DNA of 33,365 nucleotides from Basidiobolus meristosporus CBS 931.73. Lineage: Eukaryota; Fungi; Basidiobolomycota. The position numbers and the translations under genes were made by a program. Below are positions 464-27,662 of the stretch, piece after piece; the stretch's first letter is position 1, and every line of letters begins with the position of its first letter. The stretch covers positions 1 through 33,365 of the forward strand of contig MCFE01000820.1 of NCBI GenBank assembly GCA_002104905.1. Reading direction: 5' to 3'. The notes under the pieces are model-generated. The model was not told the origin of the DNA. It searched no databases and worked only from the letters and a program-made list of their open reading frames with translations.

Positions 464-812
464 TGTTGTAAAAACTTGTACTTCCACCTAAATATTCACA
501 TAACTTAGTCACTTAGATCATTACCTTCATATCCTAGAGAATACTGACCAAACTCCTTGTCAGGATTTACTTAGAATATTTTCACCAAAATTCCAGGTAC
601 CCAGAACATGAAAATTTGATAAGTTGTCCAAGCAGCCCCAAACTTTGCACACATATTCTTTGGACCTTCCATAACCTATTCTATGTGTTTGTAATGCCAC
701 AACCAGGTAGAAGTATAAATACTACTTTTACATTCAATAAATCATTAAGTGAAAACCACATAAGCTACTTGTTCTCCCAATCACTTCTAATATCTCCAAG
801 ACTCTTACAACA
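464..812 (+). mobile_element. Ty1/copia family A LTR (349 bp), solo or hybrid, flanked by ATATC on both sides
   Basis: TGTTGT...TTACAACA termini; ATATC at 459-463 and 813-817; GTATAAATAC TATA box; homologous to the 3' LTR at 11335-11683. Confidence 0.9.
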
Positions 813-941
813 ATATCAACATTTGACTCCCAATGCTTTCAGTGTACTCTGGGTAAAAATTGCTCCAGAAGGCCACCTGAATAAGTACATATCCAGCTCA
901 TCCAGTTCAGGTATTTGTATTGTTGCTTATGTGTATCAATA
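813..941 (-). pseudogene. CACTA-like transposase fragment (QQYK..WMSWICTYS region)
   Basis: Reverse complement matches 5040-5111 plus 6356-6400; near-identical to 11684-11811. Confidence 0.8.
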
Positions 942-1069
942 ACACTCTCTGATCCTGGACACTCTATTGCCTCCTACATTTGTGTGAATTGATTGGCTAT
1001 TGCCTCTTTTTCACACTCCTTACTTCCTGACTCAACCATATCTCTTACTTTTCATGCGTACAAAATGAT

Positions 1070-1725
1070 TTATTTCTGTTGAAACTTCAGTTGTACCTCA
1101 ATTGCCAATTGTATTGACCTATACAAGTCTCTATACCATACACTAACATTAAGCCCAACCCCACACTCAACAAGTAGCTCCATTAAAATCCTCCACTCAA
1201 TAAGTATTTCTGCTGTAACGCTCTGGTTCCACAACATTGGCAGGAAGCCAATGGCTTTATGCCACCGTTCATTCACTGGTTCCCACACATCCTGGTCTTC
1301 AGCTGGCACTGCAAGGTCTAGCTCCTCATCTGCCAGTCTTTGCAATAAATCCTTGCAATATTCCAGTGTGTATTCTTGAGCACTGCTCTTGAAGAAGTGC
1401 TGCAACCTCTTGGTGTACCTATTAATGTTCCAAAACTCCACTGAAGGCATTGTGATTGTCTTTCAAGCTCTTGAGGTTGTAGCCTTGTCTGTCAGTGGGA
1501 TCTCCACTCTGTCAACAATGGAGGCTGTGGAGGCTGTGGTAGACAAATTGCCTTTTCAGCAAACTCATCCACCTTGCTGGAGTGTAGCTCAACTGGCTGC
1601 ACTTCCAACTCTTGTGAAAACAGCTGTTTTCTTGTTGGTATTTCTTCTTGGCTATGATGGGATTTAGTCTGTTCCTGGCTTGCAGCATTAATTGGCAAGA
1701 ACTGCAGTTTTTTTTGCATGCCTTC
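1070..1725 (-). pseudogene. Disrupted C-terminal part of the accessory gene
   Basis: ORFs 1492..1719 and 1070..1450 are joined in one frame with the upstream repeat region in the paralog ORF 12625..13161; here they are broken by TAG (CAG in the paralog), a 1-bp frameshift and a TGA. Confidence 0.7.
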
Positions 1726-3138
1726 CTATCTCAGTCTTGGGTGGACATTTTTCCCTTTACCTTTTCCTTTATCACTGCCAGGCCTTTCACTGCTACTTTG
1801 TCTAAGTGCTTCTTGTAAAGAACTACGTTTTCTCCTGGATAAATTCTGCTCTGACACATCTGTTTTGGCCTGCTTGTCCCTTGCTGGCACTCTTCTGGCA
1901 ACCTGATGTTTCTTTTCAGCTTGTTTTGAGCTCTCAACCTTAGTTGTGACAGGCTCCTGTAAAAGCGGCTGGTTTTTATCACTGCCAGGTCCTTCACTGC
2001 TACTTTGACTGGGTGCTTTGTGAGTGGTACTACGCTTTTTACTTGATAAATGTTGTGCTGGTGCATCCATGTCTGCCTGCTTGTCCTTAATTGGCACTCT
2101 TCCAGCTGCCTGACATCTCTTTGATGCTTGTCTGGAGCGTTTGGCCCTGCTTGTAACAGGCTCTTGAGGAAGCCACTGGTTTTTAGCCATGGCACCCTTG
2201 CTATTCTGCCTTTGATAGTTTCTGCTATTCTTAAGATACTTTCTTAGCATACCAATGCTGGCCCAAAATCTGTTTGCCTGTTTGAATCCAGGATAATGCT
2301 TGAGGAACAAGTCAAGTGCATTCTGCTTGGCCTTGAGTTCCTGATGGTCCCATGGTATACTGGCCTTAAGGTGATGGCATACTAGACTTCTGATGGCCTC
2401 TTGTATATTAGCCCACTCTTCATTATTGCACTCAAAGGCTTCACAGATCTTCAATGTCTTTTGATTTTTAGGCTCAGGTATAAACGCCATGTTGTCTCTC
2501 TCCCATGTTGCAATAGGTTTTTCTGTGGGCTTTATTTTTGTGCACTGTTGTTGTGCTTCAAAGACTGTATGGTGTTCCTCTGCTGTTACATCAGGAAATG
2601 ACTCAATTCTTGGCTGTGACATTGAGCTACTTGAGTTCCTTCTTTGCAGCAAAGATACTGCTTTCTCTACCTGGGATATTGATTGCTCTACACGTATTAT
2701 CTGCTCATCCTGTTTCTGGACTACTTCCTGATTTTTCTGGGCCATTGCATCTATCCTATCAGCCACTGCACCTAATTGCTTCATTAATGCTTTGGTATGA
2801 GCTGACAACATACTTGCTAATATGGGTGGTGGTGATGTTATCATGGCCACTTGCTGATCTTCAACTGAGGGTACTGTGTTTGCTACATTCTCATCTGCCT
2901 GAGCATAATGGTCAGCTTGTGGCTCCACAGAAGTTCTCAATTGCCTACTTGACTGAGAGCCTGAGGAGTTCACATAATTACCTTGAATGGGCACACTGTC
3001 CGCAGGGCCTTTTTTGGATGTAGCCCTGCTTGTTGCACTGAATGTCAAAGCAAGCTGTTGTCCAACCGATCTTCTGTTGCCATCAGCAGTGGGGTTTGGT
3101 TGAGAACCAGACAACTTTGCTTTATTTTTTGGTGGCAT
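1726..3138 (-). CDS. 470-aa transposon accessory protein of unknown family (coiled coil, helical W-rich domain, basic 69-aa repeats)
   Basis: Long open frame; decayed paralog at 12333-14380; heptad-like segment LSAHTKALMKQL...SLLQRR; domain EEWANIQEAIRSLVCHHLKASIPWDHQ...YPGF...FWASIGMLRKYLKNSR. Confidence 0.7.
   Translation of the reverse strand: MPPKNKAKLSGSQPNPTADGNRRSVGQQLALTFSATSRATSKKGPADSVPIQGNYVNSSGSQSSRQLRTSVEPQADHYAQADENVANTVPSVEDQQVAMITSPPPILASMLSAHTKALMKQLGAVADRIDAMAQKNQEVVQKQDEQIIRVEQSISQVEKAVSLLQRRNSSSSMSQPRIESFPDVTAEEHHTVFEAQQQCTKIKPTEKPIATWERDNMAFIPEPKNQKTLKICEAFECNNEEWANIQEAIRSLVCHHLKASIPWDHQELKAKQNALDLFLKHYPGFKQANRFWASIGMLRKYLKNSRNYQRQNSKGAMAKNQWLPQEPVTSRAKRSRQASKRCQAAGRVPIKDKQADMDAPAQHLSSKKRSTTHKAPSQSSSEGPGSDKNQPLLQEPVTTKVESSKQAEKKHQVARRVPARDKQAKTDVSEQNLSRRKRSSLQEALRQSSSERPGSDKGKGKGKNVHPRLR
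1765..2178 (-). repeat. Two tandem in-frame 207-bp (69-aa) repeats
   Basis: QWLPQEPVTS...SSSEGPGSDKN / QPLLQEPVTT...SSSERPGSDKG; ATCACTGCCAGG at 1771 and 1978. Confidence 0.9.
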
Positions 3139-3569
3139 ATATATGTAAGTGAATCAAACCAAAGGGGAAATAGTGTTACATATACATGTGTATGTGGTGC
3201 CACAACTTTATTTAAAATGCTTACTATGGCAGGTCATCATTGAATCTTACATTCATGTAGGTACAATGTCTCAAATACAAGACTGTCTTAAGTTCACATG
3301 AGTATTGACCAAAAAGTGATATAATAGCGTACGTTGTTGAAGGTCAAACTGTTTGCCCCATGGACAAGTCTACTTTGACTCAACGCCGTAAGAGAAGAGA
3401 AAAAAGACCATGTGGCTATTGCGGCAAGCCTCTCAGTCATGAAGCACACAGACAGCATAGGAAGTATTACAAGGATCACAGCCAATGCTTTGCCACCCAA
3501 GTCATATTAGACCATTCATTGGTCACTACTGTACCAACATGATCTTGCCAGCCAGTTGATACTTCTATA

Positions 3570-4985
3570 TTGGCACCCGGCCGTCTTTGTAACCTTGCGC
3601 AAACTGAGTCAGGAGGTTTTTTGATGCCTTTAGGCTCACCTCAGCCTTCTGAATATGGCATGCAGAGTGATAGCTCTGACAAAGAAGGTTCACTGATGGA
3701 TTTTGAGCCTATCTCCCCTAACAACAGTACCACGTATGGGCCTGGTCAAATCCTTATATGCATTGAGACAACACCTGTTGAAACAAATGTGAAGGATACT
3801 TTATGGAGCCAAGTGAGCCCAGTAATCCATCTACTGGTGAATGATGTAATGTTGTGGCTAGAGAAGTGGTGTGTTTCCACTAATATTAGTAATGGGGGCT
3901 TTGAGGATTTACTACTACTTCTTGCCAATATCATACCGGGATGCAACTTACCATCTACGTGGTGCAAGTGGACAACTGTCATGCGGCTGGCAACATATGA
4001 TCCAGAGACTGTCCTGATTCCAGCATGTGTTAACAGTTGCATGGCATTCACATCCAAAAATGCTACCATTGCAATGTGTCCAAATTGTCAGGAATCCACA
4101 ACCATTGAGAGAAAACATTGTTCACACTCTGGATATATTCCGGTCATACCCTGTCTGAGGAAGCTGATGCAGTCCAACAAATATTGCAAAGCTATACAGT
4201 ACTGCACTCAGTATCAATCAAGTGCAAACATATCCAATATATTTGATGGCAAACATTACAAACAGCTAAGAAGCAAGGGCTACTTTGAAGGTATGTATGA
4301 CCATGCCTTTGCTTTAGCACTTGATGGATTCTCATTAAACAAGTACTCTACCAGCAAATCCTGCTGGCCACTGATTCTCATCAATCTGAATCTGCCACCC
4401 ATCTTACGGTATCAGAGCAATAATCTGATGGTAGTCTCACTGGTATCTGGGCCTAAATCACCATCCAACCTGGATAGCTACCTGTATCCATTGCTGGATG
4501 AATTTTGTATGCTTTCCAGCAGGATAATGGTAAATGGCCGTCATGTAAAAGCACATTTTATTATCTGCATTGGAGATACCCCAGCCATCAGCAAGATAGC
4601 AGGTTTTTCCAGGTGCAATGGACGGTATTGCTGTCAAATGTGTGAGATCCAGGAGATTTACTCCATAACTCACACACATTATTATTACCCAAACACCAGC
4701 ACTAAGAACATCATCTTTCCACAGAGAGAATGTACAGAAGTAAGTATGCAATTGCAGCAAAGTTGGCAAGCTATACGCCATTGGCCAGAATATGGAATCA
4801 ATTGGAAACCAGAGATACTTAAGATAGAGGGTATCTGTTGGGGCAAAAGCTTTCCACTGGGAGCAATGCATTTGCTTTTCAACAATATCCCTATACTGAT
4901 GACCAGGTTGTACATGGGGCATTTCAAGCTAAATGAGCCCTTTGAGATACCAGAGAAATTTGAAAAAATTGGCAAGATATTATAG
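3570..4985 (+). CDS. Largest open segment (471 aa) of the CACTA-like transposase
   Basis: Contains the first two catalytic Asp motifs (LDGF, GDTPA) and the CxxC/H motifs. Confidence 0.8.
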   Translation: MAPGRLCNLAQTESGGFLMPLGSPQPSEYGMQSDSSDKEGSLMDFEPISPNNSTTYGPGQILICIETTPVETNVKDTLWSQVSPVIHLLVNDVMLWLEKWCVSTNISNGGFEDLLLLLANIIPGCNLPSTWCKWTTVMRLATYDPETVLIPACVNSCMAFTSKNATIAMCPNCQESTTIERKHCSHSGYIPVIPCLRKLMQSNKYCKAIQYCTQYQSSANISNIFDGKHYKQLRSKGYFEGMYDHAFALALDGFSLNKYSTSKSCWPLILINLNLPPILRYQSNNLMVVSLVSGPKSPSNLDSYLYPLLDEFCMLSSRIMVNGRHVKAHFIICIGDTPAISKIAGFSRCNGRYCCQMCEIQEIYSITHTHYYYPNTSTKNIIFPQRECTEVSMQLQQSWQAIRHWPEYGINWKPEILKIEGICWGKSFPLGAMHLLFNNIPILMTRLYMGHFKLNEPFEIPEKFEKIGKIL

Positions 4986-5435
4986 AGTATCCACTACCCT
5001 AAGTACTTCTCACAGGCTCCAATTAATATTCATATGCATATGCAACAATACAAATGCAAAGACTGGATGAACTGGATATGTATTTATTCAAGTGGTGTTC
5101 TGAAGCCATTCTGATGTGTTGTATGATGATTAGTTTGGGGCTTGTTCTACAATGTAGAGGCTAATCAACAATATACAACAACTTCCAGTATGCTAATACT
5201 GAAATAGTTTATTGGGAGTTTGATATACCAATAGAAGATATAACTTCCACTAATTTTGTCAATCTTAGGCTCAAAATATACTGTAGGCAGTGTTTGTCAC
5301 TTCTACAGCAGTGTTCTGACCTTCTGTCAACTAATTGGCTTATTTACTTTTATAGTAACTTTTCCTTATTTGGAGGTCACTTTCCTTTCTGAGAAAATGT
5401 TTCCTAATATGGAAATTCTGAACTCCCCATCAACC

Positions 5436-5662
5436 TAAAGGGGTGTGTTGTAGAAGTCTCTAAAGGGGTCTTTAGACCTAAAGGGGTGTCTTAAGGAGTG
5501 TCTTTAGAGTAAAGAGGCTTCTTGTAGTGGTCTCTAAAGTGGACTTTACACTAAAGGGGTGCCTAAAGGGGCTTCTTTAGAGTGAAGGGGTTCTTAAAGG
5601 GGTCTCTAAAGGGGTCTTTAGAGTAAAGGGGTGTCTAAAGGGGTGTCTTTAGAGTAAAGGGG
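5436..5662 (+). repeat. Degenerate tandem array built on a TAAAGGGG core (about 14 copies at irregular spacing of roughly 12-25 bp)
   Basis: TAAAGGGG at 5436, 5461, 5479, 5552, 5564, 5636 and 5655 among others, interleaved with CTTTAGAG. Confidence 0.9.
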
Positions 5663-6007
5663 TTTCTCAGAGAGGACTTTTCCAACAGAAAAGTGGTAGT
5701 TTCTTGTAGAACTTAGATTGGATTCTTGTGAGCTTTGCAGTCTCTTTACTGATGTAGTACTGATCAAAGTCAGAATACTCAACAGTGCAAGTGATGCAGG
5801 GGAAGTCTTATAACCCTTAAACTTGTAACTGTAGTGTGGAGATTCTGGAAAGAGAGGCTCTCTTTTATTTTTCAGCTGGGGAAGTCATATATATGAAAAT
5901 TTTGAAGGATCAAAGTTTTTGGGCAATTGCACAAGCAATACACATGATACAAAGCTAAAATTTTGCAGTAGTGCAGATCAGACATAGGCGCAGCACCTGT
6001 GAAAATT

Positions 6008-6155
6008 TCACGTGATTTGATTGGCTGGCTTGAAAGTTACACGCAATCAAAGTCACCCTAGTAATCCTAGCAATAAGGCATAGTATATATAATAGTTGGA
6101 CTCTTTTGGTCATAACTCCTTAAGTACTGCTTCAAATGAGCTGTAATTTGAAGCA
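6008..6155 (+). promoter_or_regulatory. Promoter-like module: E-box, inverted CCAAT, TATA and downstream hairpin
   Basis: TCACGTGA 6008-6015, ATTGG 6020-6024, TATATATAA 6084-6092, TGCTTCAAAT/ATTTGAAGCA 6128-6155. Confidence 0.5.
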
Positions 6156-9100
6156 TGTGTTGGCTACTACGTGTTCTGTATGACATAATATTCTTGGGTG
6201 GATTGCTTACAGGGTCTGGAGCATTTGTTCTTCAAAGTTTCAAATTCTTGATCTTTCACTTGTGTGTTACAATAGCAAAAAGCAAAATAGCAAAATGAGT
6301 GCAATATTGGTTTAGAGATATTGTAGTAATGAAATACTCTCCATTACCACAATTCCTACCAAGAGTACATTGGAAGCATTGGGAGTCATATGTGAACATT
6401 GTAGGAATATTTATCTAGAAGCAGATCACCAATGCCAACTTGACACATCTACAGCTGTTGTGTGAGGAGTTTGTGAAGGGATTTGAGCAGCTATACTACA
6501 AACATAAAGCTGAGCATGTAGATCACTGCCACTACTGTATCCATTCTCTACTCCATCTTGCTTGGTGTGTGGAGAATATTGGGCCTTGCTTCACCTGTTG
6601 GGAGTTTCCTTTAGAGCGGATGTGTGGGGAGATAGGAAGACAAGTCAAGTTGCAGGTACTACCATACCCCAATCTCATCAAGAATATTACCTTCAAGTTT
6701 GTCATGGATGTGATGAGTTGGCACATGGAGGACAGCCAGAAAGAGTTGGAAAATACTGAGGACAAATGTGCACATGGAGACACCTATGCCTATGGCATTA
6801 AGAAGCTAAGCAGCCCAAATGCGTGGGTAATCAGTTAAGTAATGCAAAGTTGGGTTGGGTGCAACAAGCAACTAATTTTTATCAGGAAAACTACACCCAG
6901 ATATGCCAGATTTCTTGTGGTCACATGCCAACTTCTACACCATTCAATATGGAATTCACACAAACAAAAGCCAGAGTGCACCTATAAGGGGGACTAGAAT
7001 CCAGCAGGGAGAAGGAATATATTGGCTAAATACCAAGAAGTTCTTTGCCAATATTCAGGAGGTATCCATGGCAGAAGTGGCAACAACCAAGCATATGTTT
7101 GCAAGATGTATATGCTATCAGCAGTACAAGGTATATAGCAACTTTGTAAGTATCACACTAAAAAGCTGTAAAGTTGAGGTGATAGAAGAATGTCAATTGC
7201 GGCAGGTGTGCGCATTTGTAGAGGTTAGTAAGCAGGGGGCCATATATTTTTTTGATTTGAACTATATGTGGAATACCCAAGGTAGTAGTTGGTAAGCAAA
7301 TAAAGAAAGGTGATTCTACAGTGGAATATATGAATTGCTTAAGGGGAGGTAGAAAAAGGAAATACCATTTGATAAATTGGTATGGTAGCATTATACAGAA
7401 CCAGTAGCAGGCCATCATACTGCCAAGAAAAAGCCATTGGAGTCTTGCTGTGAGGCCATTAAAATACCATCAAGCTTCTTGCCATATAAGGCAAGTGGAA
7501 GTCCTGGCCAACTGGATCCACTTAAAATAGTAATAGAGCGCTGAGAGACCGCAACAATACCATGAAAATATTGTCACAGCACCTATCAAAAATTGTCAAG
7601 TTTTATCCCTTTATTTGGCTGTAAAGTTTGCAAAACACCGTCATGATCTTGTTATAAGATTGTCAGGAGGGTCACTAATTCCAAGCTACTGTTATTATGA
7701 TGGTCTCTAAATGGGATCTTGACAGATGATCCAGATTGGATCCACCTGCAGGATCAAATTATTGTTCATAGGGAGAATTACCCTGCTGGTAAATGATATG
7801 GAATCTGTGGGCGTACCATCTACTGATGAGGATGTGATAGTTACCATCCTGAATAGCATGACATATGAGTTTCAGGGCCTTGTTTCAGCCCTAGAGTCCA
7901 GAACTGAAGATTTGACCTTAAATTACATATATGGAAGGCTCCTGGATGAAGAATTAAGAAAATCAAGCGCAAATAGGAAGGAAGAAGAAAATGCTTTAAT
8001 AAGCAATGTTAACCAACAAAGGAGGTACCCAAAACCCTACAAAGGCAACAGCAACCTGTTTTGTAACTACTGCAAAATGAAAGGACACACATCAGACTAG
8101 TGTCTCAAAAAGAAAGATAATCCGCAAAAGAAGCCTGAATATGGAAATGCTGCATCAACTGAAGATAGACTATTTATATCTGCACTAGATATGACCACAA
8201 ACAAGGATTCTCAGATGTGGTATATTGACTCTGGAGCATCTCAACACTTTACACACTACAAAGAACTTTTTACCCAATATTAAGATTTTCCAATTAAGAA
8301 GGTTTTCATGGGTGACAATAGAACACTTAATACAGTGGGAGAAGGAACTATCCAAGTAAGCCTAAGAAGCGGTGAAGGAAGCCATACACTGACTTTCAAA
8401 GAAGTACTCTATGTACCAGAAATAGCCAAGAACCTACTATCTGTAAGCAAGGCCACTGGAGAAGGACTCAATTTCAACTTTGACAATTCTGGATGCAAGA
8501 TCACTGATCAAAATGGTGCCCATATTGCTTTGCAAATCAGAGATCAGAATCTATACAAGTTGACTTATATTCCATCATATCTGGAAGCCAATATAAGTAA
8601 CTTACATGAAGAAACACCAATGCTTTGGCACAGGAGATTTGGGCACATCAATTTTGATTATTTGCGCAAAATGATCAAAGATCAGCTAACTTTGGGGGTA
8701 AAGTTGATCCCCCACTAATTTGGAGCACTGTGAAGCCTGCATATATGGGAAACAAGCCAGACAACTGTTCAAGAGCTCTGGGTTAATCAAAACTAAGAAA
8801 AAATCAGATCTAATTCACTCAGATCTGTGTGGACCTATGCAAAATTTATCCTTAGGTGGGATGAAGTATTTAATCACTTTTATTGGTGATTATACAAGAG
8901 ACACATGGGTCTACTTTGTGGAGACAAAGGAAGAAGCTCTGTCTAAGTTTGGGGAGCTTAAAGTCATGGTAGAGAGAGAAACTGGTGAAAAAATCAAGAA
9001 AATATGCTCTGACAATGGTGGAGAATATACCTCAAAACTCTTCATCCACTTCTGCAAAATTCATGGGATAAAGAAAGAGACTACTGTACCATACTCTCCA

Positions 9101-11322
9101 CAGCAAAATTGAGTAGCAGAATATGCTAACAGATCAATAATTGATATGGTAAGATCTCTGATCCATGATGAAAAATTATCCTATGATTATTGGGTGGAAT
9201 CAGTTGCCACTGCTGTATATCTTAGAAATAGGAGTTATGACAGAATACTTCGTGATTCTACTCCATTTGAAGCATGGTATGGATACAGACCAAGTGTAGA
9301 ACATCTAAGAATATTTGGGTGTACAGCATATGCCAAGAAATTGCCCAGAAATCAGTCAAAATTTGAGCCCAAAAGTGTAAGATGCATATTTTTGGGCTGC
9401 TGCAATGAGAGTAAAGCATTCAGACTCTAAAATACCAAAGCAAAGAAGCTAATCAAGTCCAGGGATATGTTTGATGAATATTCAAATTTTCACAAAAAAT
9501 GCCATCAGATGATAACAAAAATCTGATCTCAATTCCACCAATTGTCAGGATTGAATCAGAGCAAAACAATATGGATTTTTTTCACTCCAGAGGACTCTAC
9601 AACTGTGGTTCAGCCAGAATCAGTGCCCAGGAATATCCCATAAGTGATCATTCCAGTATCAAATGCCAGGAGATCCAATCGGACAAGAAATAGCTCAAAT
9701 TACTATATCAATGAGGGTACAAACTTAGCCTATGCCTAATCAGTCCATATTGATGAGCCCCAGAATGTAAAAGAGGCCCTAAATAGCCCTCAGACAAAGT
9801 TTTGGAGATCTGTAATGACTGAGGAATATCAGGCCCTGATGGAAAATCAAACTTGGGACTTAGTCAAATTACCAATCAACCAAAAATCAATTGGATACAG
9901 ATGGGCCTTCAAGACAAAATACTAGGCTGATGGTACAATTGAAAGATACAAAGCAAGATTTTTAGCCAAAGGATACTCTCAAACAAAAGGACTTGACTAT
10001 ACTGAGACCTTTGCACCAGTAGCCTAGTTTAATTCCATCAGATTAATATTGGCTATTGCAGCCAAATAAAAGTTTTTCATTCATCAAATGGATGTAAAAA
10101 CTGCATTTTTGAGTGAAGAACTTGATGGGGATGAGTATATGGACCAGCCTTATGGGTTTGTTGACCAAGATCACCCCCATTTGGTCTGCAAGCTTAAAAA
10201 GTTACTATATGGTCTCAATCAATCACCAAGAGCCTGGAATTGAAAGATAGATTCTTATTTGGAATTTTTGAGTTTCAAAAGGAGTAATGCTGGCTATAGT
10301 ATATACTATAAGCCACATAGAGCAAACCCAGCTCTATTAGCTCTCTATGTGGATGATCTTATTATAGCCACTAATAACCTAGAAACATTGGAAGAGACAA
10401 AATCCAGCCTGTCTAAGAAGTTCAGGATGTCCAATCTAGGAGAACTCAGTTACTACTTAGGGATTAAGTTCTCCATAGACAAAAGTACCCAGACTATTAC
10501 CCTAAGCCAATCCAAGTATATTCAAGATATACTAGAGAAGTACCAAATGGAAGACTGTAAACTAGCAGCTACCCCAATGGAGACAAACCTTAATTTGGTC
10601 AATACTCAACCAAATCAAGAGAGCTTGGTGCCATCTAAAAGCCCTGACTTTCCTTATCAATCTATGATTGGCAGCCTGATGTATATCATGCTTGGAACAG
10701 GTCCAGATATCTCATATTCAGTGGGAGTTGTCAGCCAATATAATCAGAACTATGGATCTGATCATATTAGAGGAGTTAAGCGGTTTTTAGATACCTAAAA
10801 GGAACTGCTGATATCTGCTTAAGATACACTTATAAGGATTCAGAACAGGATCTTGAGGGATACTCTGATGCTGATTGGGACAAAATTTGGAAGACAGAAG
10901 ATCCACCACAGGATACACCTTTCTTCACTGTAAAGGAGCAATTTCATGGAATTCAAGAAAGCAACCAACCATAGCACTTTCTACCACAGAGGCAGAGTAC
11001 ATAGCAGCCTGTGACACTACAAAAGAAGCAATGTGGCTGAGAAAGCTTCTTACAGATTTAGGCCTATGTCAAAAAATGCCTATTACTTTATTTCAAGATA
11101 ATCAAGGAAGTATACAATTAGGTAGGAATCCAACTTTTCATGCTAGAACCAAGCACATAGGCATCAGACATCATTTCATACATGAAGCTATAGAGAATAA
11201 CTTAGTTAGCTTAGTGTACTCCCTACAGATGAAATGATTGCAGACATATTTGCCAAACCATTAGCGCGAGACAAGTTTGAATATCTTTGGTCAAAATTAG
11301 GACTAGTCAATACAAACATTTA

Positions 11323-11334
11323 GCTGAGTGGGAG
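11323..11334 (+). other. Polypurine tract of copia A
   Basis: GCTGAGTGGGAG immediately 5' of the LTR TG. Confidence 0.8.
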
Positions 11335-11683
11335 TGTTGTAAAAATTTGTTTTTCCACCTAAACATTCACCTAACTTAGTCACTTAGATCATTACCTTCA
11401 TATCTTAGAGAATACTGACCAAATTCCTTGTTGGGATTCACTTAGAATATTTTTACCAAAATACCAGGTACCCAGAACATCAAAATTCTCAAAGTTGTCC
11501 AAACAGCCTCAAATTTTGCGCACATGTTCTTAGGACCTTTCTTAGCCTATTCTATGTGTTGGTAATACCAAGACCAGGTAAAAGTATAAATACTACTTTT
11601 ACATTGAGTAAATCATTAAGTGCAAACCGCATAATCTACTTGTTCTCCCAATCACTTCTAATATCTCCAAGACTTTTACAACA
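11335..11683 (+). repeat. Copia A 3' LTR (349 bp) followed by ATATC
   Basis: TGTTGT..TTACAACA after the PPT; ATATC at 11684-11688. Confidence 0.95.
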
Positions 11684-11811
11684 ATATCAACATTTGACTC
11701 CCAATGGTTTCAGTGTACTCTGGGTAAAATTGCTCCAGAAGGCCACCTGAATAAGTACATATCCAGCTCATCCAGTTCAGGTATTTGTATTGTTGCTTAT
11801 GTGTATCAATA
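11684..11811 (-). pseudogene. CACTA-like transposase fragment duplicated from or to 813-941
   Basis: One substitution and one 1-bp indel relative to 813-941. Confidence 0.85.
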
Positions 11812-11909
11812 CCCTGCAAAAAATAATACTGAGGATCCTGTCAAAGGGTTGTCACAAAGCTTATATCTGGTGACTAAGAGGTAGTGATGCAACAAAGACA
11901 CCATGCAAA

Positions 11910-12150
11910 TGTTGTGAGTCTTGAAGATTTTGTAAGTGACTGGTAGAACAAGTAGATTGTGGTTGTCACCTAATGACTTATTGAATGTAAAGGTAGTATC
12001 TATACTTCTACATGGTCTTGGTATAACAAATACATGGATTAGGTTTGGGAAGGTCCCAAGATCATGTGTGCAAAGCTTTGGGCTGTTTGGGCAACTTTGA
12101 GAATCTTCATGTTCTGGGTACCTGATATTTAGGTGAAAGTATTCTTAGTG
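11910..12150 (-). repeat. Partial copia A LTR, inverted
   Basis: TGTTGTGAGTCTTGAAG is the reverse complement of the LTR 3' end; homology fades near 12150. Confidence 0.75.
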
Positions 12151-12332
12151 AGTCCAGTATATTGGTGGCTATTGGTTGGTTCCCTGCTTATTCTCTCACT
12201 TGCTTATCCCAGACACTCAATGATCTCCTGCACTTGTGTGTTTTGATTGGCTATTGCCTATTTCTCATACTCATTATTTCCTGACTTAACTGACATGCTT
12301 ACTTTTCATATATACCAATTGGTTCATTTCCT

Positions 12333-14380
12333 TTAAAACTCTAGTAGTATCTCAATTGCCAATTGTACTGGCCAATACAAGTCCCTATGCCTAACACTGA
12401 CTTTAATCACAACCTTACACTCAACAAATAACCACATTGAAATCCACCACTCAATAAGTATTTCTGTCAGAATGCCCTTTCCATGACTTTGGCAGGAACC
12501 CTGTGGCTTTATGGCATTGTTCATTCTCTGGTTCTCATACATCCTGGTCATCAGCCAGCACTGCAAAGTCTTGCACCTGGTCTGTCAGTCTTTGCAGTAA
12601 ATCCTTGCAATATTCAAGTGCCTGTTAAGAATTGGTCTTGAAGAAGTGCAGCAACTGCTTGGTGTGCCTATTGATGTTCCAAAACTCCACTGCAGACATT
12701 GTCATAGTCCTTGGAGTTCTTGATGTTGTTGCTTTGTCTGTTAGTGGGATCTCCACACCATCTACAATGGAGGATGTTGAGGTAGTGGTAGACCAAGTAT
12801 CTTTCTCTTCAAGCTCATCTACCTCACTGGAGTGTAGCTCAACTACATGCACTTCCAACTCTTGTGGAAACTCAACTACATACATTTCCAACTCTTGTGA
12901 AAACAGTTGTTGACTTGTTGTTAAATCTTCTTGGCTAGTATGAGACAGAGCATGTTCCAGGCAGACAGCAATAGTTAGTAAAAACTGCAGCTTTTTTCTT
13001 ACACCTCCCTGCCTCTGGCTTGGGTAGACTTTTGCCTGATTACATTGATCACTGCCAAACCTTTCACTGCTACTTTGACTGAGTGCATCTTGCATTGTAC
13101 TGTGTTGTCTCCTAGATAAGTGCCAAACCAATGCATCCACTTGTGCCTGCTTGTCCCTCATCAGCTACTCTTCTAGCTTCTTGATGTCTCTTTCCTGCTT
13201 GCTTTGCCTTTTCACCCTGCTTGTGACAGGCTGCTCAGAAAGCCACAGGTTCTTCTTCTGGCTATGGGTCCCATCTTTGCCACTTGCTTGGAGCTTTTAG
13301 CCCTGCCTGTGAGAAGCTCTTGAGGAAGCTGCTGGCTTTTAGCCATGGTGCCCTTGTTCTTCTGCCATCAGTTGTGTCTGCTATTATTGAGATATTTTCT
13401 AAGCATACCAATGTTGACCAAAAGTCTACTTGCTTACTGGCAGCTGATGTGAAAATTTGTAATTGCACCAAAATATACACCAAGCTTAGTCCAATCATTA
13501 CCTACAAATCTTATGAAATACCAACCAAATTCCTTGTTGGGATTTACTTGGAATACCTTCACCAAAACACCAGGTACTCAGAAAATGAAAATTCACAAAG
13601 TTGTCCATCAGCTCCCAACTTTACACACATGTTCTGGGGCCCTACCTAAGACTATTCTACATGTTTGTTGTATTGGCACAATGTAAAATTATAAAATCTA
13701 CTTTTACATTGAAGAAATCATTAAGTGAGAACCACATAATCTACTTGTTCTCCTAATCATTTCTGTTATCTCCTAAACTCCAACAACAGCAGCAAGGATA
13801 ATGTTCATGGAGCAGATCAAGTATATTCTGCTTGGCCTTGAGTTCCTGATAGTCTCACAGTATGCTGGCCTTAAGGTGATGCTATGCTAGACTTCTTATG
13901 GCCACTTGATTATTAGCCAATTTTTCACCATTGCATTCAACAGCTTCACCAATCTTCAATATCTTTTGATCTTTAGGTCTGGGTTAATATCACAGTCTCC
14001 CCTTCCCATGCTGTGATTGACTTTTCTGTGGTCTCTATGGGTCAATGTTGTTGTGCTTCAAAAACTTTATGGTGCACCTCTGCTGTTACAGCAGGAATTG
14101 GCTCATTTCTTGGCTGTAATATTAAGCTACTGGAGTTCCTTCTTTGCAGCAAAGATAGTGTATTCTCTGCTTAGGATATGGATTGCTCTTCACATGTTAT
14201 CCACTAGTTCTGCCTCTGGACTATTTTCTGATTTCTCTGGGCCATAGCATCAGTTTTATTTGCCACTGCACCTAAAACTCATTCATGCTTGGTATGAGCT
14301 GACAACAAACTTTCCAATACTGGCAATGGTGATATTGTGCTGGCCACTTACTGGTCCACCAATAGAAGTATTGTGTTTGC
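12333..14380 (-). pseudogene. Decayed paralog of the accessory gene, split by a solo LTR
   Basis: ORFs 12333..12566 and 12625..13161 match 1070-1950 (EILIEW..VEC..VSV..RDLY..QLAIE; VEFWNINRHTKQLLHFFK). Confidence 0.85.
13445..13788 (+). mobile_element. Copia A solo LTR (344 bp), TSD GCAGC
   Basis: GCAGC at 13440-13444 and 13789-13793; TG..CA termini; homologous to the other family A LTRs. Confidence 0.9.
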
Positions 14381-16460
14381 AACTGCACTTCAGCCAGAAT
14401 TAGTGCCCAGGAATATTCTGGAAATGATCATTTCAGTATTGAAAACCAGAAGACCCAACTGGACCACAAGTACCCCAAATTACTTTATTGATGAGGGTAC
14501 AAACTTGGCCTATGCTTATTGAGTCCATATTGAAGAGCCTTAGACTGTAAAAGTGGCCGTAAATAGCCCTCAGACAAAGTTTTGGAGATCAGCAATGACT
14601 GAGGAGTATCAGGCCCATATGGACAATTGAACTTGGCACTTGGCAAAAATACCAATAAGCCAGATATCAAATGGATGGAGATGGGACTTCAAGACAAAAT
14701 ACAAGGCTGATGGTACAATTGAAAAGTCCAAAGCAAGACTGGTGGCCAAAGGATTCTCCCAAACAAAAGAACCTGACTATACTGAGACCTTTGCCCTGGA
14801 AGCCAAGTTTAAATCCATCATATAAATGTTGGCTATTGCAGCCAAATATAAGTTTTTTATTCAGCAAATGGATGTAAAAGCTCCATTTCTGAATTGAGAA
14901 ATTATTGAGAACATGTACATGGACCAGCCTAACAAGTTTGCTGACTAAGGTAACCCCCACTTAGTCTGCAAGCTTAAAAAATTAGTATTTGGTGTCAAAC
15001 AATCACCAAGAGCCTGGAACTCCAATATAGTTTTGTATTTGGAATCTTTGAGCTCCCAAAGGAGTACTGCTGACTATAGTATATACTATAAGCCAGATAG
15101 AGCAAGTCCAGTTCTATTAGCTCAATATGTGGATGATCTTACTATAGCCACCAACAACCTACAAATACTGGAGGAGACTAAATCTGGCCTATCTAAGGAG
15201 TTCAAGATGTGCAAAATAGGAGAGCTCAGGTACTACTTAGGAGTAAGGTTCCCCATATACAGGAGTACCCAGATTATCATGCTTTGCCAATCCAGGTATA
15301 TTCAAGATATACTCAAGAAGTACTAAACAGAAAGCTGTGAGCCAGCAGCTGCCCCAGTGCAGACAAACCTTAACTTGGTCAAAATACAGCCAAGTCAAGA
15401 GAGTTTGGTGCCATCCAAAAGCCCTAACTCTCATTATCAATCTACGGCAGGTAGTCTGATGTTTTTCATGCTTGGATTATATCTAGATATTTCATATTCA
15501 GTGGAAGTTGTCAGCTAGCATAATCAGGACTACAGATTTGATACTATTACAGCAGTTGAGCAGATTTTTAGATACCTAAAAGGAACTGCTGATATCAGCT
15601 AAAGGCACATCTACAAGGATTCAGAACAACATCTTGTGGAATAATCTGAAGCTGACTGGGGACAAAATATAGAAGACAGATGATTTACTACTGGATACAC
15701 CTTTCTTTGCTGTAAAGGAGTAATTTGATGGAATTCAAGAAAGCAACCAACCAGAGCACTTTCTACCACAGAGGCAGAGTATATGGCAGCCTGTGAAGCC
15801 ACAAGAGAAGTTATGAGCCTAAGAAAGCATATTGAAGAATTAGCTTAATGTCAAAAGTGCCTACAAATTTATTTCAAGATAATCAAGGATGTATATATTA
15901 GGTAGAAATCCAACTTTTCATGCTAGAGATAAGCAAAGAGACATCAGATATCATTTCATATGTGAAGTTATAGACAATAACCAGGTTAACTTGGCCCACT
16001 ATCCTACAGATGAAATGATAGCAGATATATTTATCAAACCGTTAGCTAGAGACAAGTTTGGTTATCTTTGGTCAAAACTGGGACTATACAGTATGAGTAT
16101 TGAGTCAAGTGGGAGTGTTGTTGTAGTTAGTAGCTCCACTTAAATATTCACCTAACTTGGTTGCTTAGCTCATTGGCTACAAATTCTAGAAATACTTGCC
16201 AAATTCCTTGCTGGGATTTACTTGGAATATTCCTACCAAAATATCAGGTATTCAGAGCATGCAATTCTCATACTTGTCCAAACAATCCCAAACTGTGCAA
16301 ACAGCTTCTTGGGACCTTCCTAGATAAAATATATGTGCTAGTTGTGCCAAGAACATGCAAAATTATAAATACTACTTTTACATTCCATAAATCATTAGGT
16401 GAAGCCACCTAATCTACTAGCTCTCCAATTGCTTGCTGTATCTTGAAGACTCTTACAACA
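14381..16460 (+). mobile_element. Second copia A 3' half (RT-RNase H pseudogene, PPT, 3' LTR 16116-16460)
   Basis: KARLVAKGFSQ, QYVDDL, STTEAEY; colinear with 9600-11683; PPT AAGTGGGAG before TGTTGT at 16116. Confidence 0.92.
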
Positions 16461-17330
16461 GCAAGTACTCCCATATCCCAACCTCATCATAAATATGACC
16501 TTCAAGTCCATCATGGATGTAATGAGTTGGCACATGGAGGGCTGCCAGGTATAGTTGGAAAATACAGAGGACAGATGTGCGCATGGAAACACCTGTACCT
16601 TTGGTACTGCAAAGCTAATCAGCCTCAATGAATGTATAATCAGTTAAGTAAGGCAAGGTTGGGATGGATACAACAAGCCACTAATTTTATTAGAGCAACT
16701 TTACCAAAGTATACCAAGTTTCTTCTAATTACAAGCCGGTTTTTATACCTATCAATACAGAATCCACACAAACAAGAACCAGTGCACACTTATAAGGGGG
16801 ACTAGAGTCCAGCAGTGAGAAGAAATACATTATCATTGCACCAAGAGGTATTTCAAGTATATTTAGGATATATTTATGGCAAAAATGGTGGCAACCAGGT
16901 AAATGTATGAAAGATGTTTAAGTTACCAGAAATCCAAGGTATATGGCAGCTTTGCAAGTGCCTCATTGAGAAGCCATAGGGTTGAGGTGATAGAGGTGTG
17001 TCAATTCCAGCCTGTGTACGCATATGAAGAGGTCAGTATGCAGGAGGCCATAATTATCTGAATTCAAACTATATATGTAATGCCAATGGTAATGATGTGC
17101 AAACAAATAGGCTGGGGGGACTCTACAGTGGAATATATGAATGGTGCAAGGGGTGGTAGAAAAAGGAAATACTATCTGGTACCTTGGTACAACAGCTTAA
17201 CTCACTACTAGCTGTAGGTAGTAAAACTGCCAGAACAATACCAGCAGATGTCCACATCAAGGCCATCAAAGCACTATCAAGTTTTTTTCCAAATTTAAGA
17301 TTGGCATATATTGGCTAGTTGGGTTTTCAT
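16461..17330 (+). pseudogene. CACTA-like transposase 3' remnant
   Basis: QVLPYP-type and downstream sequence colinear with 6655-7510. Confidence 0.8.
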
Positions 17331-17789
17331 AAATATATTTAAAATGCAATTTGATTGTTGGAATGCAATTCAAATTTCTCCAAATGACCACTAAACTAAT
17401 GAAAAGCTTGGTAACCATTTTAGCAGTAAACTCAGCAAAAGACTATTATGATTTGGTCATAACATTGTGATAATGCTAAATAATATCAGGCTGCTGGCTA
17501 AGCCAGATATCAGCTAGATATCAGGAATTAGTGAAGTAATGAGTCTTGAGAAAATCTGAGACTTTGCCAAATGAGCTGAATCTTGGCTCATGAACTACTA
17601 AGACTTCCCTAGTAGTGAGCAATATTTATGTTTACATAGTTCTGCAATAAGCATTGATACTGTGCTGCAACCCAGTAAGCCAACAAGTGGATACCATGTA
17701 GATCTTCTAATTCTCCAGTTTACTTCCAATGTATCTCTCTGATACTTCCACAAGCATGACTCACTAGCACCACTTGCTATCTATACACT

Positions 17790-18621
17790 TATGCAACTAT
17801 ACAAATGCAAGGACTGAATGTACTGGATATTTCCTTATTCAACTAGCCTATCAGGGTTACTTTTACCTAGTGCACATTGGAAACAATGGGAGTCAGATGT
17901 TGATATTTTAAGAGTACTTGTTTCACAAGAGGTTCACCAATGTCTTTTTAGCATATCTACCAATTCATTCAAGGAGTTTGTATTGCAATTTAAGAGGCTA
18001 TACTACAATCATCAAGCTAAGCACAAAGATCTTACAAGCAGGATTAGAATTGAGCAGGGAGAAGAAACATATTGGCTAGGTACTGAAAAGTATTTTGTCA
18101 GCATTCAGGAGGCATTCACAAAAGAAGTGGCTGCAACCAAGCATATGCTTGCAAGATGTATATGTTACCATCATTACAAGGCATATGGCAACTTTGCAAA
18201 TATAACACTGAATAGCTCTAAAGTTGAGGTAACAGATATTTGTCATTTGCAGCAGATTTGTGCATATGTGGAGGTTGGTAAGCAGGAGACCATAGTTTCT
18301 TTGGCTCAAACAACATGTCAAATACCTATTGTAGTAATGATAAAGCAAATAAGATTGGGGCAAATATACAATGCAATATATGGATGGTGCAAGGAGAGGT
18401 AGCAAAAGAAAGTACCCGTTGGTAAACTGGTATAGTAGTGTTGTACAGCACCAGCTGTAGGCAGCCAAACTGCAATCATAATACTAACAGATGCGTGCAT
18501 CAAGGCTATTCAATCACCTTCAAGTTTTTTTCCATATACAGTATTTGCCTGAGCTGGCCAGCTTAGTCTGCTCAGATGAGTGTAGACTGCAATAGAACCA
18601 TGCAAATATGACTTAAGGACT
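17790..18621 (+). pseudogene. Third plus-strand CACTA-like transposase 3' remnant with internal deletion
   Basis: ORF 17818..18402 fuses the HWKQWES..FKRLYYNH segment directly to RIRIEQGEE, skipping roughly 470 bp present in copy 1. Confidence 0.8.
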
Positions 18622-18993
18622 TATTACAAATCTTAATATAAGATATGTAGAGGAATAAAGAGTTTGGCTAGTATTTACTCAATAAACTTGAACTAATCAT
18701 TATTAAGGTTCCAGCAGCTCCTCAAATATAGTTTGCCAGATCAATTGCTGACTAGTTGTATTTCCCAATGTAGATTGTGGCTGATGACTCATTTGACTGC
18801 ATCATCATCATCAAATCAGATCTTACTTAGAATACTTATTTCTGTCTGATAAAGATCTGCCAACTAATACCACTATTTTGATAGATAATACTGATATGCT
18901 GATATGTTAAATATAAAACTGATTGCTTTCATCAAATACCAATCTATCTTAGAAGCTGATCTGACTTAGACAGTCAAGCATCAGCTCATAATA
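18622..18993 (-). repeat. Degenerate gypsy 3' LTR
   Basis: Aligns to the reverse complement of 31864-32231, with the degenerate PPT adjacent. Confidence 0.9.
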
Positions 18994-20880
18994 TTCTTCA
19001 CTACTAAAGCTGAGAGGGTTCTCCTGATTCTCTTTTCTTGTGGTAACAGTATCTTGATGGTTTAGTATTGTCAGTAAGTCTTGCATGCTTGAATCTGTCT
19101 CTATGAGTTAGAACTTCTTGTATATTACTTTGTTTGTCTACTAGTAGGTAAGTTATAAATGGATATTTTTGATGGTCTTGAGTGGCCCTATCCATTGTGG
19201 TTCAGACCTCTTGCAAGTATTGTTTCTTAGCAATACAAAGTTCCCAGCTGCTCAAGCCTCTGGTGATATAGTGTTATCAAATCTCTGCTTCATCTTTTGT
19301 GCCCATTTAGAGACTTTGGCCTGAGCCTCCTGATGTTTTTGTTCCAGTTGTTGGTGTCTACTAGACTGACCAAGCTCATCCTCCAAGCTGTTAGTGAGTT
19401 TTGGCTGTGAAACATTGCCTGGAATTCTTGATTCATACCCATATACCAAATAAAATAGCAATTGTTGGGTAGTGTAGTGCACCCTAAATGTGCAGGCAGA
19501 CAGTGCTTGGTCAAAATACTCATCCCACCTGCTTACAGCTCCATTTGCATACTTGGTCACCATTTTCCATATAATCTATTAAATCACTCAGTGACTCCAT
19601 TAGTTCTAGGGTGATATGCCAAAGTTTTTAGATGTTTGATCTGCTGCATTTCCAGATAGGCTTCCAATGTTTTTGCCACAAAGTTTGCTCCTCTATAAGA
19701 TAGGATTTCTGCAAGGCATCCAAACTACCTCAGGATCTCATGGTAGATGAAACTTGCAGCCCTTGCTCACTGGCTACAGGTACAGCTTAACAACTGGCCA
19801 TTTAGTAGTATGGTTGTTTGCTACTAAAATCCAACAATTGGGTTTCAGGTAGTGGGCAGTCTTCCAACAAAGTCAATTCCCTATTTTTCAAATGGTCTTA
19901 ATGGAATTAAGGGAAGGAGCTCAAAAATTCTCTGGGGTTGACCTTGGTTGATTTAGCAACTTGGGCATGTTTTCACTGACCTCTCAATATTTGAGTCCAT
20001 TTGGGGCCACCATGCTCTAGCTTTTACAAGGCTATGGGTTCCCTCAATTCACAGATATTCAAATCCATTGTGTAGCTGGTGTATTAAGTCCAGGGAAGCA
20101 ACATAGGGGCAATAGGCAATAGAGTTTCCATAAATAGCTTGGTAAAGTGTTGCATCCTGCACTACAAATTTACTAGCTTCATCCTGGATAATCTTCTTGA
20201 TGTCTTCATCTGCCTCATTAGAAATGGCTGGGTCCTATAATTACATTGATAATAGGCTGGGTCAATCTGATTCATGCACAAAGTTGATTTGGGCAACTTG
20301 TTCTAGTCTTGATTAGGCATTAACAACCATCTTATTTTTCCCAGGGCACTAGACAATCTCCAGGTCTAATTGTTGAATGTATTCACTCCATTGTGTCATA
20401 CTTCTGGATGTCACCCTCTGAGTAAATATATACTTGAGTGAGGCATGATTAATCTTCACAATGCACTTGCCTCATTCAATGCAGCATCTCCAAGTCTTCA
20501 GGCAGTGTATTATGGTAAGCATCTCCTTCTCATGCACAGAATAGTTTTGTTCTGTTGAGGTCAGTTTGTTAGACTCAAAAGCAAATGGGTATTCTTTTCC
20601 CTTATGTTCTCAGCTCAGTACTCAGCCAATTGTATAATATGAAGCATCTATGCACTGAGTGAGCTCTTTTCTGAAGTCAGGTATTTGCAAGTTTGGCAGC
20701 TTGGCAGGTTCATTCTTGAGCATCTGAAATGCAGTTGTACAGGTTATGTCCCAATTCAAGGTTTTGCCTTTCTAAAGGATGTCAGCCAAAGCAGCTGCAG
20801 TACTTGCAAAGGAGTTGAAAAGTCCTCTATAATTGGAATCCATTCCAAGAAATAAACTGAGCACTGAAAGGCTATGGGGC

Positions 20881-23800: not shown

Positions 23801-24920
23801 GGCCTAGTGTCCTGGCTTCTTAGAGTAGTCACAGCAACCACATTCTTTTTGGTTCTGTTGCTTTCTCTTCTTCTCTGTGTGCCCTTGTGAGCTGAATAGG
23901 GCATTATCTTCTGTTCTCTCTGCTTGGCCATTATGTCTATGCTATTCCCGGAGAGGGTCTTGTGCTTGCATAGTCTATAATAAGATTGTCTTCTATGCAC
24001 TCAAGAGAAAGTGTGAGTGGCTCATACTTGTCTGGTAAGCAGCAAAGTAGACAGAGTATCATTTCTGTCTCATCTACACCTGCGTCAATACCATCAAGCT
24101 CTTTTGCAAGTGTCTCCATTCTGATAATTTGCAGTAGCATGTCATCCTCTGGCTTCTTTGTCATGTTGAAGTGCTTTTGCTGCAAATGAAGCTTACTTGA
24201 TACTAACATATTCTGAAGATCTTTTCTAAGAACTCCTATGCTGCTTTGGCAGTATTAACAGCATGAATTTGGCCAATGAAAGAATCTTGCACTTTGATAC
24301 TTATGTCATTGAAGGCTTTTATCTCCTTCTCTTGAGAATTTTCAACTTCTTCTTTTGTTCCTTTGGGCTCAACCTCCTTTCCCATCAGTGTATTCCAATG
24401 CTCTCTTTCCTCATGGTGGATTGGCATCTTGACTCTCCAGAGCTTGTTGTTCCTTCCATCAAGCCTCTCCTATGAAGTGAATATGTTTGTATTGTTCTGT
24501 TTGCTTGTAAATATCATCTTTAGACTAGAGTAAGGTAATAAGGGCTCAAAAGCTGTTATAAATTAAATGTTTCTTGAAGTGAGGGAACTTATCAACAAAG
24601 AATAGTTCCAGTGGAGCTGTAGCTTAAACATAAAGAAAGCTCAGTAGTTCTACCTTTGTAGAAATAACACAACTGTCACACCAAGTATGCAGGGTTTCTC
24701 AACATTCAGGAGCATTCTATAACAGTTTCAGGGTTAATACATAAGTATGATAAAAGTGCTGATTTGTTCTTAATTAAAGGAGAGTAATTGTAGGATTATA
24801 GATCTGAAAGAAAGTATAAAGTTAGGGCTGTTATTTAGTCCTACGGTGACAAGGACTAGCTCAGAACTGTTGAGTAAAATTCTTGCTATGAATGATACCC
24901 AATGGTTCAACATCTCAACA
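20881..24920 (-). mobile_element. Ty1/copia family B element with both LTRs (20881-21245 and 24554-24920), internally deleted, TSD GGGGC/GTGGC
   Basis: PPT GCTGAGGGGAAA (21246-21257, minus); degenerate PBS GCTTTTGAGCCCT (24541-24553, minus); gag, DSG protease, IN and RT/RNase H remnants; the gypsy sequence rejoins across it. Confidence 0.92.
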
Positions 24921-26342
24921 GTGGCTACTCCAGATTTGTGATAACTTCCACTTTCTTTGGGACCTGGGTAATGCCTGTGCTAATCACTATTTGTCCTACA
25001 TACTCAACATATATGCTGAACAGCTCACACATTGCTAGCTTGTTCTCTGTTTGCTTCTTAAAGACCTTTTCAATGTTTGCTTAGTGGTCCGCATTTGTCT
25101 GGCTGTATATCAATATGTCATCTAGATAGATGAGCACAAACTTGTTTAAGTTCTCCTGGAAAATGGTTGCATTAAGGTCATGAATGTTGTAAGAGCAATG
25201 GTGAGGCAAAAACTCATGAATAGGTGGTTGTTATGTCCATATCTAATCCGGAATGCTGTTGTGGGGATACCTTCTGGTTTCACCCTAGTCTGGTTGCATC
25301 CTGATATGTGATCTATATTGGTCAATATGATGGCTCCATTAAGTTAGTCCAAAAGCTCATCAGTCCAAGGTATAGTGTACTTATTTTTTGCAGTAACTAA
25401 ATTATGATCCCTGTAGTTAATGCACATCCCAAGTGTTCCATCCTTCTATTTCACAAAAAGCACTGGTGCTCCCCAAGGTGACTTGCTGGGCCTGATGTTT
25501 CCTTGTTCCAATAGTAGAACAGTTTGTCTCCTCATCTCTTCCAATTCCATTGGACTTATAGTGTAGGGTGTCTTGCTGAGTGGGGAGCTATCCCCTGGGT
25601 AAATGACATTTACCCACATCTTGGACTGGTGGTAGGCTTACAAGTTCTGCTGGAAACATGCTTGAATATCTATTCAGAGGAACCTGAAGCCTCTAGGGAG
25701 CTGGAGTATAGAAATCATCCTGCAATACTGCAGCAAGAAATATCTTTATAACACTCCTAAGTGCACTGCAGAACCCTGCCTTGCTTAGTTCTCTGGTTTC
25801 CAACATGTTGGGATTGACCAACTTGAAATTCAGTCTGGCAGGTAGTAGTTTGTAGGCCTAGTAGCCTTCTTGTTACTGAGTGGAATGGTTCTCTAATTCA
25901 TTGATGTATTACAGTTGTATAGCCATGTTTTTCCAAGAACCAGGTCAAATTTACAGTTTCCTAGTATATAGGTCTGCAGGTCTTGTTTATAGTCATTGAT
26001 CTCCATTCTTACTTGCTGAGTGATACAGTTGATTATGTGAGTGATCACATAAGTTGCTCAAGCTGAAGTGAATTTGTTAAGTTCCAAGTTGATCCTGGTT
26101 TCAAGGCTGGTTGTTCTGACATGTACTTGTGTGATGCTCCTGAGTCAATCATAATCTTGGCAGGTACTCCATTGATTACTCCATTTAAGTATAATATATT
26201 CCTTGAGCTTGAGGTCATTTGGGATAAGTATTTGTCTGCCACTTGGAAGGCAAGCTTGGAGTCCTCTACAAGTTCAGCTTCCACTGCACTATGTCCTTGG
26301 GCTTCACTACAGTAGAAAGTTCCTGTAAACCAATGGTGATTT

Positions 26343-26723: not shown

Positions 26724-26747
26724 CAATTGCCTTAATCTATTCTAAAG

Positions 26748-27661: not shown

Positions 27662-27662
27662 T

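Follow-up and report, generated by a model that had tools for sequence, protein, structure and literature searches.

Contig MCFE01000820.1 of Basidiobolus meristosporus CBS 931.73, which is 33,365 nucleotides long and is here called the window, contains at 943-7773 a sequence that is very probably a dead DNA transposon of the cut-and-paste kind, with two genes, which belongs to the CMC/EnSpm (Transposase_21) superfamily and comes from a fungus of the Basidiobolus type. This degree of confidence covers the identity of the element and excludes the function of its second, accessory gene. The element (copy 1) carries a minus-strand open reading frame (ORF) of 470 codons at 1726-3138, which stands head-to-head with a plus-strand transposase frame that begins with an ATG at 3360. 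The 221 bp between the two divergent start codons (3139-3359) are presumably the common promoter region for both genes. Both genes of copy 1 are pseudogenes and the copy is a decayed, left-truncated relic. The window as a whole has about 39% G+C and consists nearly entirely of nested transposable elements (TEs). Huge expansions of CMC-EnSpm elements have been described in Basidiobolus genomes (PMC5751038).

The transposase gene

The transposase was recognised by the match of ORF 3570-4985 to the Pfam family Transposase_21 (PF02992), with an E-value of 2.5e-17 and 63.3 bits at a cut-off of 28.6. An original prediction, made from the sequence letters of this DNA, had described a Transposase_21/DUF4218-type transposase on the plus strand, beginning 221 bp from an ORF on the opposite strand. 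The Pfam match and the length of the spacer bear out this arrangement and the first of the two domain names, whereas DUF4218 was matched only marginally by the 3′ third of the gene (E 0.14).

The nearest relative of the transposase is the environmental protein P0001 (698 residues, also PF02992), and this protein served as a ruler for tracing the extent of the gene. The translation of 3360-5111 is 47% identical to residues 31-522 of P0001 over 492 residues. This plus-strand stretch represents the 5′ two thirds of the gene, with a CxxC...HxxxH N-terminus followed by the Transposase_21 core, and keeps to one frame, which is interrupted by stops at codons 61 and 542. The gene resumes at 6326-6838 and goes on to about 7295. 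This 3′ third (6326-7295, plus strand) corresponds approximately to residues 516-684 of P0001; it contains the motifs HSLLH and WEFPLER, and its last part is a C-terminal extension (ORF 6903-7295). The two parts are separated by an insertion of 1.2 kb (5112-6325), which is present neither in P0001 nor in the minus-strand transposase fragment E0 that lies outside copy 1 (see below). A 72-bp tandem array within the insertion (5456-5664) is rich in CTAAAGGGG. No coding signal was seen in the insertion, which may be a non-autonomous element.

The motifs DGF, GDTPA, CQMC, HSLLH and FPLER are legible in the translations. The series GDTPA...CQMC...HSLLH...FPLER matches the C(2)C and H(3-4)H signature, which marks the EnSpm-Mirage-Chapaev-Transib-Plavaka (CMCT) clade (PMC12730594). 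Catalytic residues were assigned by inspection of the translations, without alignment to reference transposases. Judged by these sequence matches, the transposase is of the DDE type and the element belongs to the CMC/EnSpm superfamily.

The accessory gene and its protein family

The accessory gene of copy 1 occupies 1070-3138 on the minus strand. It is open from 3138 to 1726 and broken from 1725 to 1070: past the stop at 1726 the frame continues for about 90 more codons, followed by a frameshift, a second stop and a 126-codon ORF (1070-1450). A second copy of the element (copy 2, 11812-17294) stays in one frame across the first break, from which we estimate a length of about 690 codons for the intact accessory gene, with no intron evident. 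In addition, copy 1 carries a 207-bp (69-codon) tandem duplication at 1768-2181 that is single in copy 2. In the searches described here, the pieces of the broken accessory gene and of the transposase were used separately and never joined into one protein.

An exhaustive HMMER search of 1.84 billion representative proteins returned two relatives only. The first, P0003, is an unnamed protein of 299 residues from an ENA contig, which matched with an E-value of 1.8e-24 and 30% identity over residues 120-326 (207 residues). The second, P0004 (KAK9738516.1), is a partial hypothetical protein of Basidiobolus ranarum and matched with an E-value of 2.3e-06. The 470-codon ORF, P0003 and P0004 have a common core with invariant P-NQKTL, C, W, YPGF-QA and WA. 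Since a cross-species homologue was found at an E-value as low as that of P0003, we regard the accessory gene as a real, conserved coding gene.

Other searches with this protein returned little. When the 470-residue ORF, the conserved core and the C-terminal piece were compared with Pfam at E-values up to 10, no family was matched, including Transposase_24 (PF03004, TnpA), and the only signal came from weak coiled-coil look-alikes at residues 112-175. Nothing new came from the word-index protein search, in which the 470-residue ORF and a profile of the three sequences served as queries, the protein atlas gave only sub-threshold matches to unnamed clusters, and no significant match was found among PDB sequences (E-values of at least 0.77). 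Scans of metagenomes with the transposase and, separately, with the accessory profile gave no matches, nor did tblastn of the 470-codon ORF against plasmids. The earlier statements that the partner protein shows no recognisable TnpA motif and belongs to no recognised family were upheld, the first by the lack of a Transposase_24 match and the second in Pfam, among PDB sequences and in the fold comparisons reported below.

AlphaFold2 models of two parts of the accessory protein were built on a shallow alignment. In them, a helix some 65 residues long is joined by a disordered linker to a compact domain of three helices (predicted local distance difference test, pLDDT, 70-85; helix and domain together 70-87). 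The protein would have a disordered, basic N-terminus rich in S, Q and P, a predicted coiled coil of about 65 residues, and a conserved domain of about 95 residues that is modelled as three helices and contains the motif NQKTL...C...W...YPGF.QA..WA. The 69-residue repeats are rich in K, R and S and are likely to form a basic region, and the C-terminal region of about 160 residues had no match in the Pfam, protein atlas and PDB searches.

Second copy, element borders and surrounding repeats

The accessory region recurs in copy 2 at 12197-14383 with 74-78% nucleotide identity to copy 1. This minus-strand pseudogene corresponds to codons 85 to about 690, contains 11 or more in-frame stops and is split by a solo long terminal repeat (LTR) at 13445-13788, which is flanked by the duplication GCAGC. 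The stops often stand at Q, W or R codons of copy 1, with 198 transitions versus 128 transversions, and the decay of copy 2 may be of the deamination type. In place of the accessory gene's N-terminus, the spacer and the first 618 or so residues of the transposase, copy 2 has a plus-strand copia-type fragment with an RVT_2 domain and a 3′ LTR (14380-16460), which is the 3′ half of a copia-type element and 81% identical to 9600-11683. This fragment is followed by a transposase tail (16461-17294, plus strand), which comprises the residues from about 619 on and the 3′ region and is 75% identical to 6652-7382. When the window was searched by tblastn with a 471-residue piece of the transposase, no second copy was found. 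Copy 2 has retained the order of accessory gene (minus strand) and transposase tail (plus strand), with the middle of the element replaced. The layout that had been proposed for a second, diverged copy was thus correct as to the order and the presence of an accessory gene, which proved to be riddled with stops, but of the transposase only the last third is left, and the part of the right half at 14380-16460 that had been taken for transposase is the copia fragment.

Copy 1 had originally been delimited at 942-7753, and both borders had to be revised. Homology with copy 2 starts at 943, where the sequence CACTCTCT reads CACT. We considered this position as a CACTA terminus and rejected it, because it has no inverted partner and adjoins a recently copied patch; it is a rearrangement breakpoint. 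The following 943-1069 are a truncated left subterminal remnant in which CTATTGCC occurs twice. Copy 2 reaches 385 bp further left than copy 1, to CCCTGCA at 11812, and its candidate left end (11812-12196) contains a nested, reverse-oriented partial copia LTR at 11910-12155. On the right side of copy 1, the subterminal region (7296-7773) ends with CATAGGG at 7767-7773, exactly on the junction with a copia gag fragment, and 7773 is more likely to be the right terminus than 7753.

The candidate ends at 11812 and 7773 align from their first base, with CCCT followed by AA.AATAAT and then GATCCTG. A few short motifs recur near each end, namely the 8-9-mers CTATTGCC and GGCTATTG on the left, and AATACCAT (three times), TGGATCCA (twice) and TTGTCA (three times) on the right; none of them was common to the two ends when these were compared. 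The candidate ends CCCTGCA (11812) and CATAGGG (7773) do not have the form of CACTA-type termini (5′-CAC(TA)...(TA)GTG-3′), and the right end, ...GTTCATAGGG, does not have that of Plavaka termini (TGT..ACA or CATCA..TGATG). The designation CACTA-like is supported by the Transposase_21 superfamily match but not by the termini, for which CCCT.../...AGGG are the candidates. The terminal inverted repeats (TIRs) of SmTRC1 and of some insect CACTA-related elements begin with CCC (PMC1636069).

The flanks of the two copies carry traces of their history. The older transposase fragment E0 lies on the minus strand at 29-463 (residues 682 to 536) and continues at 11689-11811 (residues 538 to 494), and a recent copy of this second piece is found at 818-941. 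A plus-strand copia-type LTR with TG...CA ends occupies 464-812; its partner LTR at 11335-11683 is preceded by a polypurine tract, and the 5-bp duplication ATATC is found at 459-463, 813-817 and 11684-11688. We also considered the repeat at 464-812 as a miniature inverted-repeat transposable element. The TG...CA ends, the 5-bp duplications, the polypurine tract and its continuity with a reverse transcriptase in two copies identify it as a copia LTR instead. In the simplest reading, one copia element (464-11683) split E0, and copy 1 lies nested within that element. On the right, copy 1 ends against the middle of the copia gag, where the Pfam match starts from profile position 104.

The segment 464-941 matches 11335-11811, and the match stops at the same nucleotide before both copies. 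Identity along it is stepped: about 790-941 and 11660-11811 are 98.3% identical, the rest of the LTR pair 88%, and the elements past the junction approximately 75%. The 98.3% tract looks like a recent conversion or repair patch that would have overwritten the left end of copy 1. It stops exactly where the candidate terminus of copy 2 starts, and the patch is possibly tied to an excision attempt at the element end. A single tandem duplication as the origin of copies 1 and 2 was rejected, the flank being 98% and the bodies about 75% identical.

Because the 98.3% patch stands beside elements of about 75% identity and the outer flanks differ (copy 1 adjoins the copia gag on its right, copy 2 the old transposase fragment on its left), the two copies are best read as separate insertions of two diverged family members. 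Independent insertion is probably what took place and is the most economical, if unproven, model. It supports the idea that the accessory gene travels with the element. For this earlier proposal, the order kept in two copies with different flanks is favourable.

The surroundings also bear on a different reading, in which the accessory ORF is part of another nested or neighbouring repeat and owes its place beside the transposase to local duplication rather than to co-mobilisation. The window is indeed a dense, rearranged nest of TEs, both copies are preceded by the same LTR and transposase fragment, which stop at 941 and 11811, and the element termini are unproven. However, the contrast between the common flank at 98.3% and the elements at about 75% indicates a recent patch and not a shared origin, the copia gag to the right of copy 1 is not matched by anything past copy 2, and no CCCTATG-type terminus motif of another element was found within the 221-bp spacer. 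We consider this reading most improbable and keep to that of two independently inserted copies of a two-gene element.

The remainder of the window consists of other repeats. The decayed copia-type elements at 7774-11683 and 14380-16460 are 81% identical to each other and contain gag, integrase and RVT_2 sequences; the solo LTR at 13445-13788 and the reversed fragment at 11910-12155 belong to the same copia family. A further transposase fragment, E3 (17743-18538, plus strand), comprises residues from about 483 to 579 and the tail, and is cut at 18620 by a Ty3/gypsy LTR. The possibility that E0 and E3 are long inverted arms formed by the transposase C-terminus was rejected, as their starts are about 10 residues apart and they are diverged like any other pair. 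An apparently intact, young Ty3/gypsy retrotransposon is located at 27290-32231, with LTRs (27290-27661 and 31860-32231) that are 99.7% identical and an ORF of 1377 codons (27720-31853) with gag, protease, reverse transcriptase, RNase H and integrase domains. Older fragments at 18620-26700 and 32233-33359, about 80% identical, are relatives of this gypsy family and of the sequences around it. Being in inverted orientation, these fragments form kilobase-scale inverted repeats with 26343-33359, and it is one of their LTRs that cuts E3.

Possible role of the accessory protein and comparison with known systems

Several results weigh against reading 943-7773 as a transposon with a second protein that serves its movement. 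Terminal inverted repeats and target-site duplications are unproven, since no copy in the window retains both ends. The end-to-end similarity between 11812 and 7773 is marginal (score 24, with the 95th percentile of shuffles at 22), and no inverted repeat was found between the left ends and the tails. Relatives of the accessory protein are scarce, with two among 1.84 billion proteins. As P0003 and P0004 are encoded on contigs of 1793 and 1206 bp and hence not on the 5.2-kb contig of P0001, neither can be the second gene beside P0001. The ratio of nonsynonymous to synonymous substitution rates (dN/dS) between the two accessory copies was 0.50 (bootstrap interval 0.38-0.63), compared to 0.59-0.82 in the off-frame controls from this alignment. 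At best, this is a faint sign of constraint within the accessory family, as would be expected if much of the divergence arose after the death of both copies; the protein-level match to P0003 and P0004 is the better evidence that the gene is, or has been, functional. Finally, Foldseek searches with the two AlphaFold2 models remained at background level (E-values of at least 0.8), and the best VIA-align score for the isolated domain (Z 5.9) was under the noise level of the tool. The top matches in the fold searches were generic long helices, three-helix bundles and assorted three-helix DNA-binding and other domains, so DNA binding by the modelled protein seems to get no backing from them.

The weakness of the evidence for purifying selection between the two copies would also fit a transduplicate, a host gene or piece of one that was captured and plays no role for the element, and CACTA-type elements do acquire extra coding domains, with a variable ORF2 content described in PMC8978399. 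Such an origin is nevertheless highly unlikely here. No host-gene relative was found among the 1.84 billion proteins, both matches lying on contigs of 1.2-1.8 kb, and the gene is also large, at about 690 codons, begins at a start of its own 221 bp away from the transposase start and is conserved at the protein level across diverged lineages.

For the element as a two-gene transposon, we propose a mechanism in which the transposase would do the cutting and joining. Both genes would use the 221-bp spacer as a bidirectional promoter, which the accessory protein perhaps regulates. The accessory protein would oligomerise via its coiled coil, like maize TnpA or schistosome SmTRC-PrA, and bind the repeated subterminal motifs or the chromatin of the element, thereby helping the transposase to pair and cut the ends. 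As possible functions, the original prediction had named end-binding, targeting and anti-silencing. By analogy, the protein may be a TnpA-like DNA-binding cofactor, an assignment that we make tentatively. It is rather doubtful that it is the founder of a new class of transposon cofactors confined to Basidiobolus-like fungi, with the three-helix domain as an unseen DNA- or chromatin-binding module and the head-to-head layout as an independent answer to the need for two proteins.

Long disordered basic regions and a coiled coil suit a chromatin adaptor equally well as a DNA binder, and the accessory protein is lineage-restricted and fast-evolving. These properties would agree with a passenger that, instead of serving as a transposition cofactor, has a regulatory or anti-silencing task similar to that of VANC in VANDAL elements or of the TET/JBP genes in fungal transposons; fungal EnSpm, Plavaka and other elements repeatedly carry passengers that are thought to counter silencing (PMC12730594). 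We regard a passenger of this kind as unlikely, given that the Pfam, PDB sequence and fold searches revealed no similarity to TET/JBP, to any enzyme or to a known silencing domain.

If the accessory protein was needed for transposition as a cofactor, an early-diverging fungus would have re-created the two-protein logic of CACTA-type elements from an unrelated protein and in another gene arrangement, and a small domain of unknown fold class would be added to the transposon cofactors. For TE annotators, the accessory family is a marker for a family that helped to inflate Basidiobolus genomes. What has been gained here is a corrected anatomy of the element, external homologues of the accessory protein, and negative family and fold searches.

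The original prediction had seen in this element a candidate for an undescribed system. This is true of the accessory protein family, but the transposon superfamily is known and includes fast-evolving, lineage-specific second proteins. Second proteins of unclear ancestry (SmTRC-PrA, PMC1636069) and passenger genes in fungal elements of the CMCT clade (PMC12730594) have already been described. The undescribed part seems to be the accessory protein family together with the head-to-head layout, inside a known superfamily.

Like maize En/Spm, the element combines a Transposase_21-type transposase (TnpD in maize) with a second element-encoded protein (TnpA in maize), and subterminal regions of a few hundred bp lie outside the genes. 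The division of labour proposed here, between a cutter and a DNA-binding, oligomerising helper, would be a further likeness. In contrast, En/Spm has one same-strand transcription unit with alternative splicing (PMC1636069), whereas the two genes here are divergent, 221 bp apart and without visible introns. Moreover, the accessory protein has no Transposase_24 match, and the candidate ends are CCCT.../...AGGG instead of CACTA...TAGTG.

The SmTRC1/TRC elements resemble the Basidiobolus element in their Transposase_21 domain and in TIRs that start with CCC, like the candidate CCCT end. They also encode a second protein, PrA, which is the presumed analogue of TnpA and lacks detectable relatives in other lineages (PMC1636069). 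However, their products come from alternatively spliced same-strand transcripts (PMC1636069), PrA-type proteins have no sequence relation to the accessory family, and a head-to-head order is not described in that study.

With the fungal EnSpm, Plavaka and ESTA elements of the CMCT clade (PMC12730594), the element has in common a fungal host and more than one gene per element. It differs from the fungal elements that carry TET/JBP genes in that its passenger is not a TET/JBP dioxygenase, as judged from Pfam, PDB sequences and folds, and from Plavaka (TGT..ACA or CATCA..TGATG) and EnSpm (CAC..GTG) in its candidate right end, ...CATAGGG. Finally, the host here is a zoopagomycete-grade fungus and does not belong to Dikarya.

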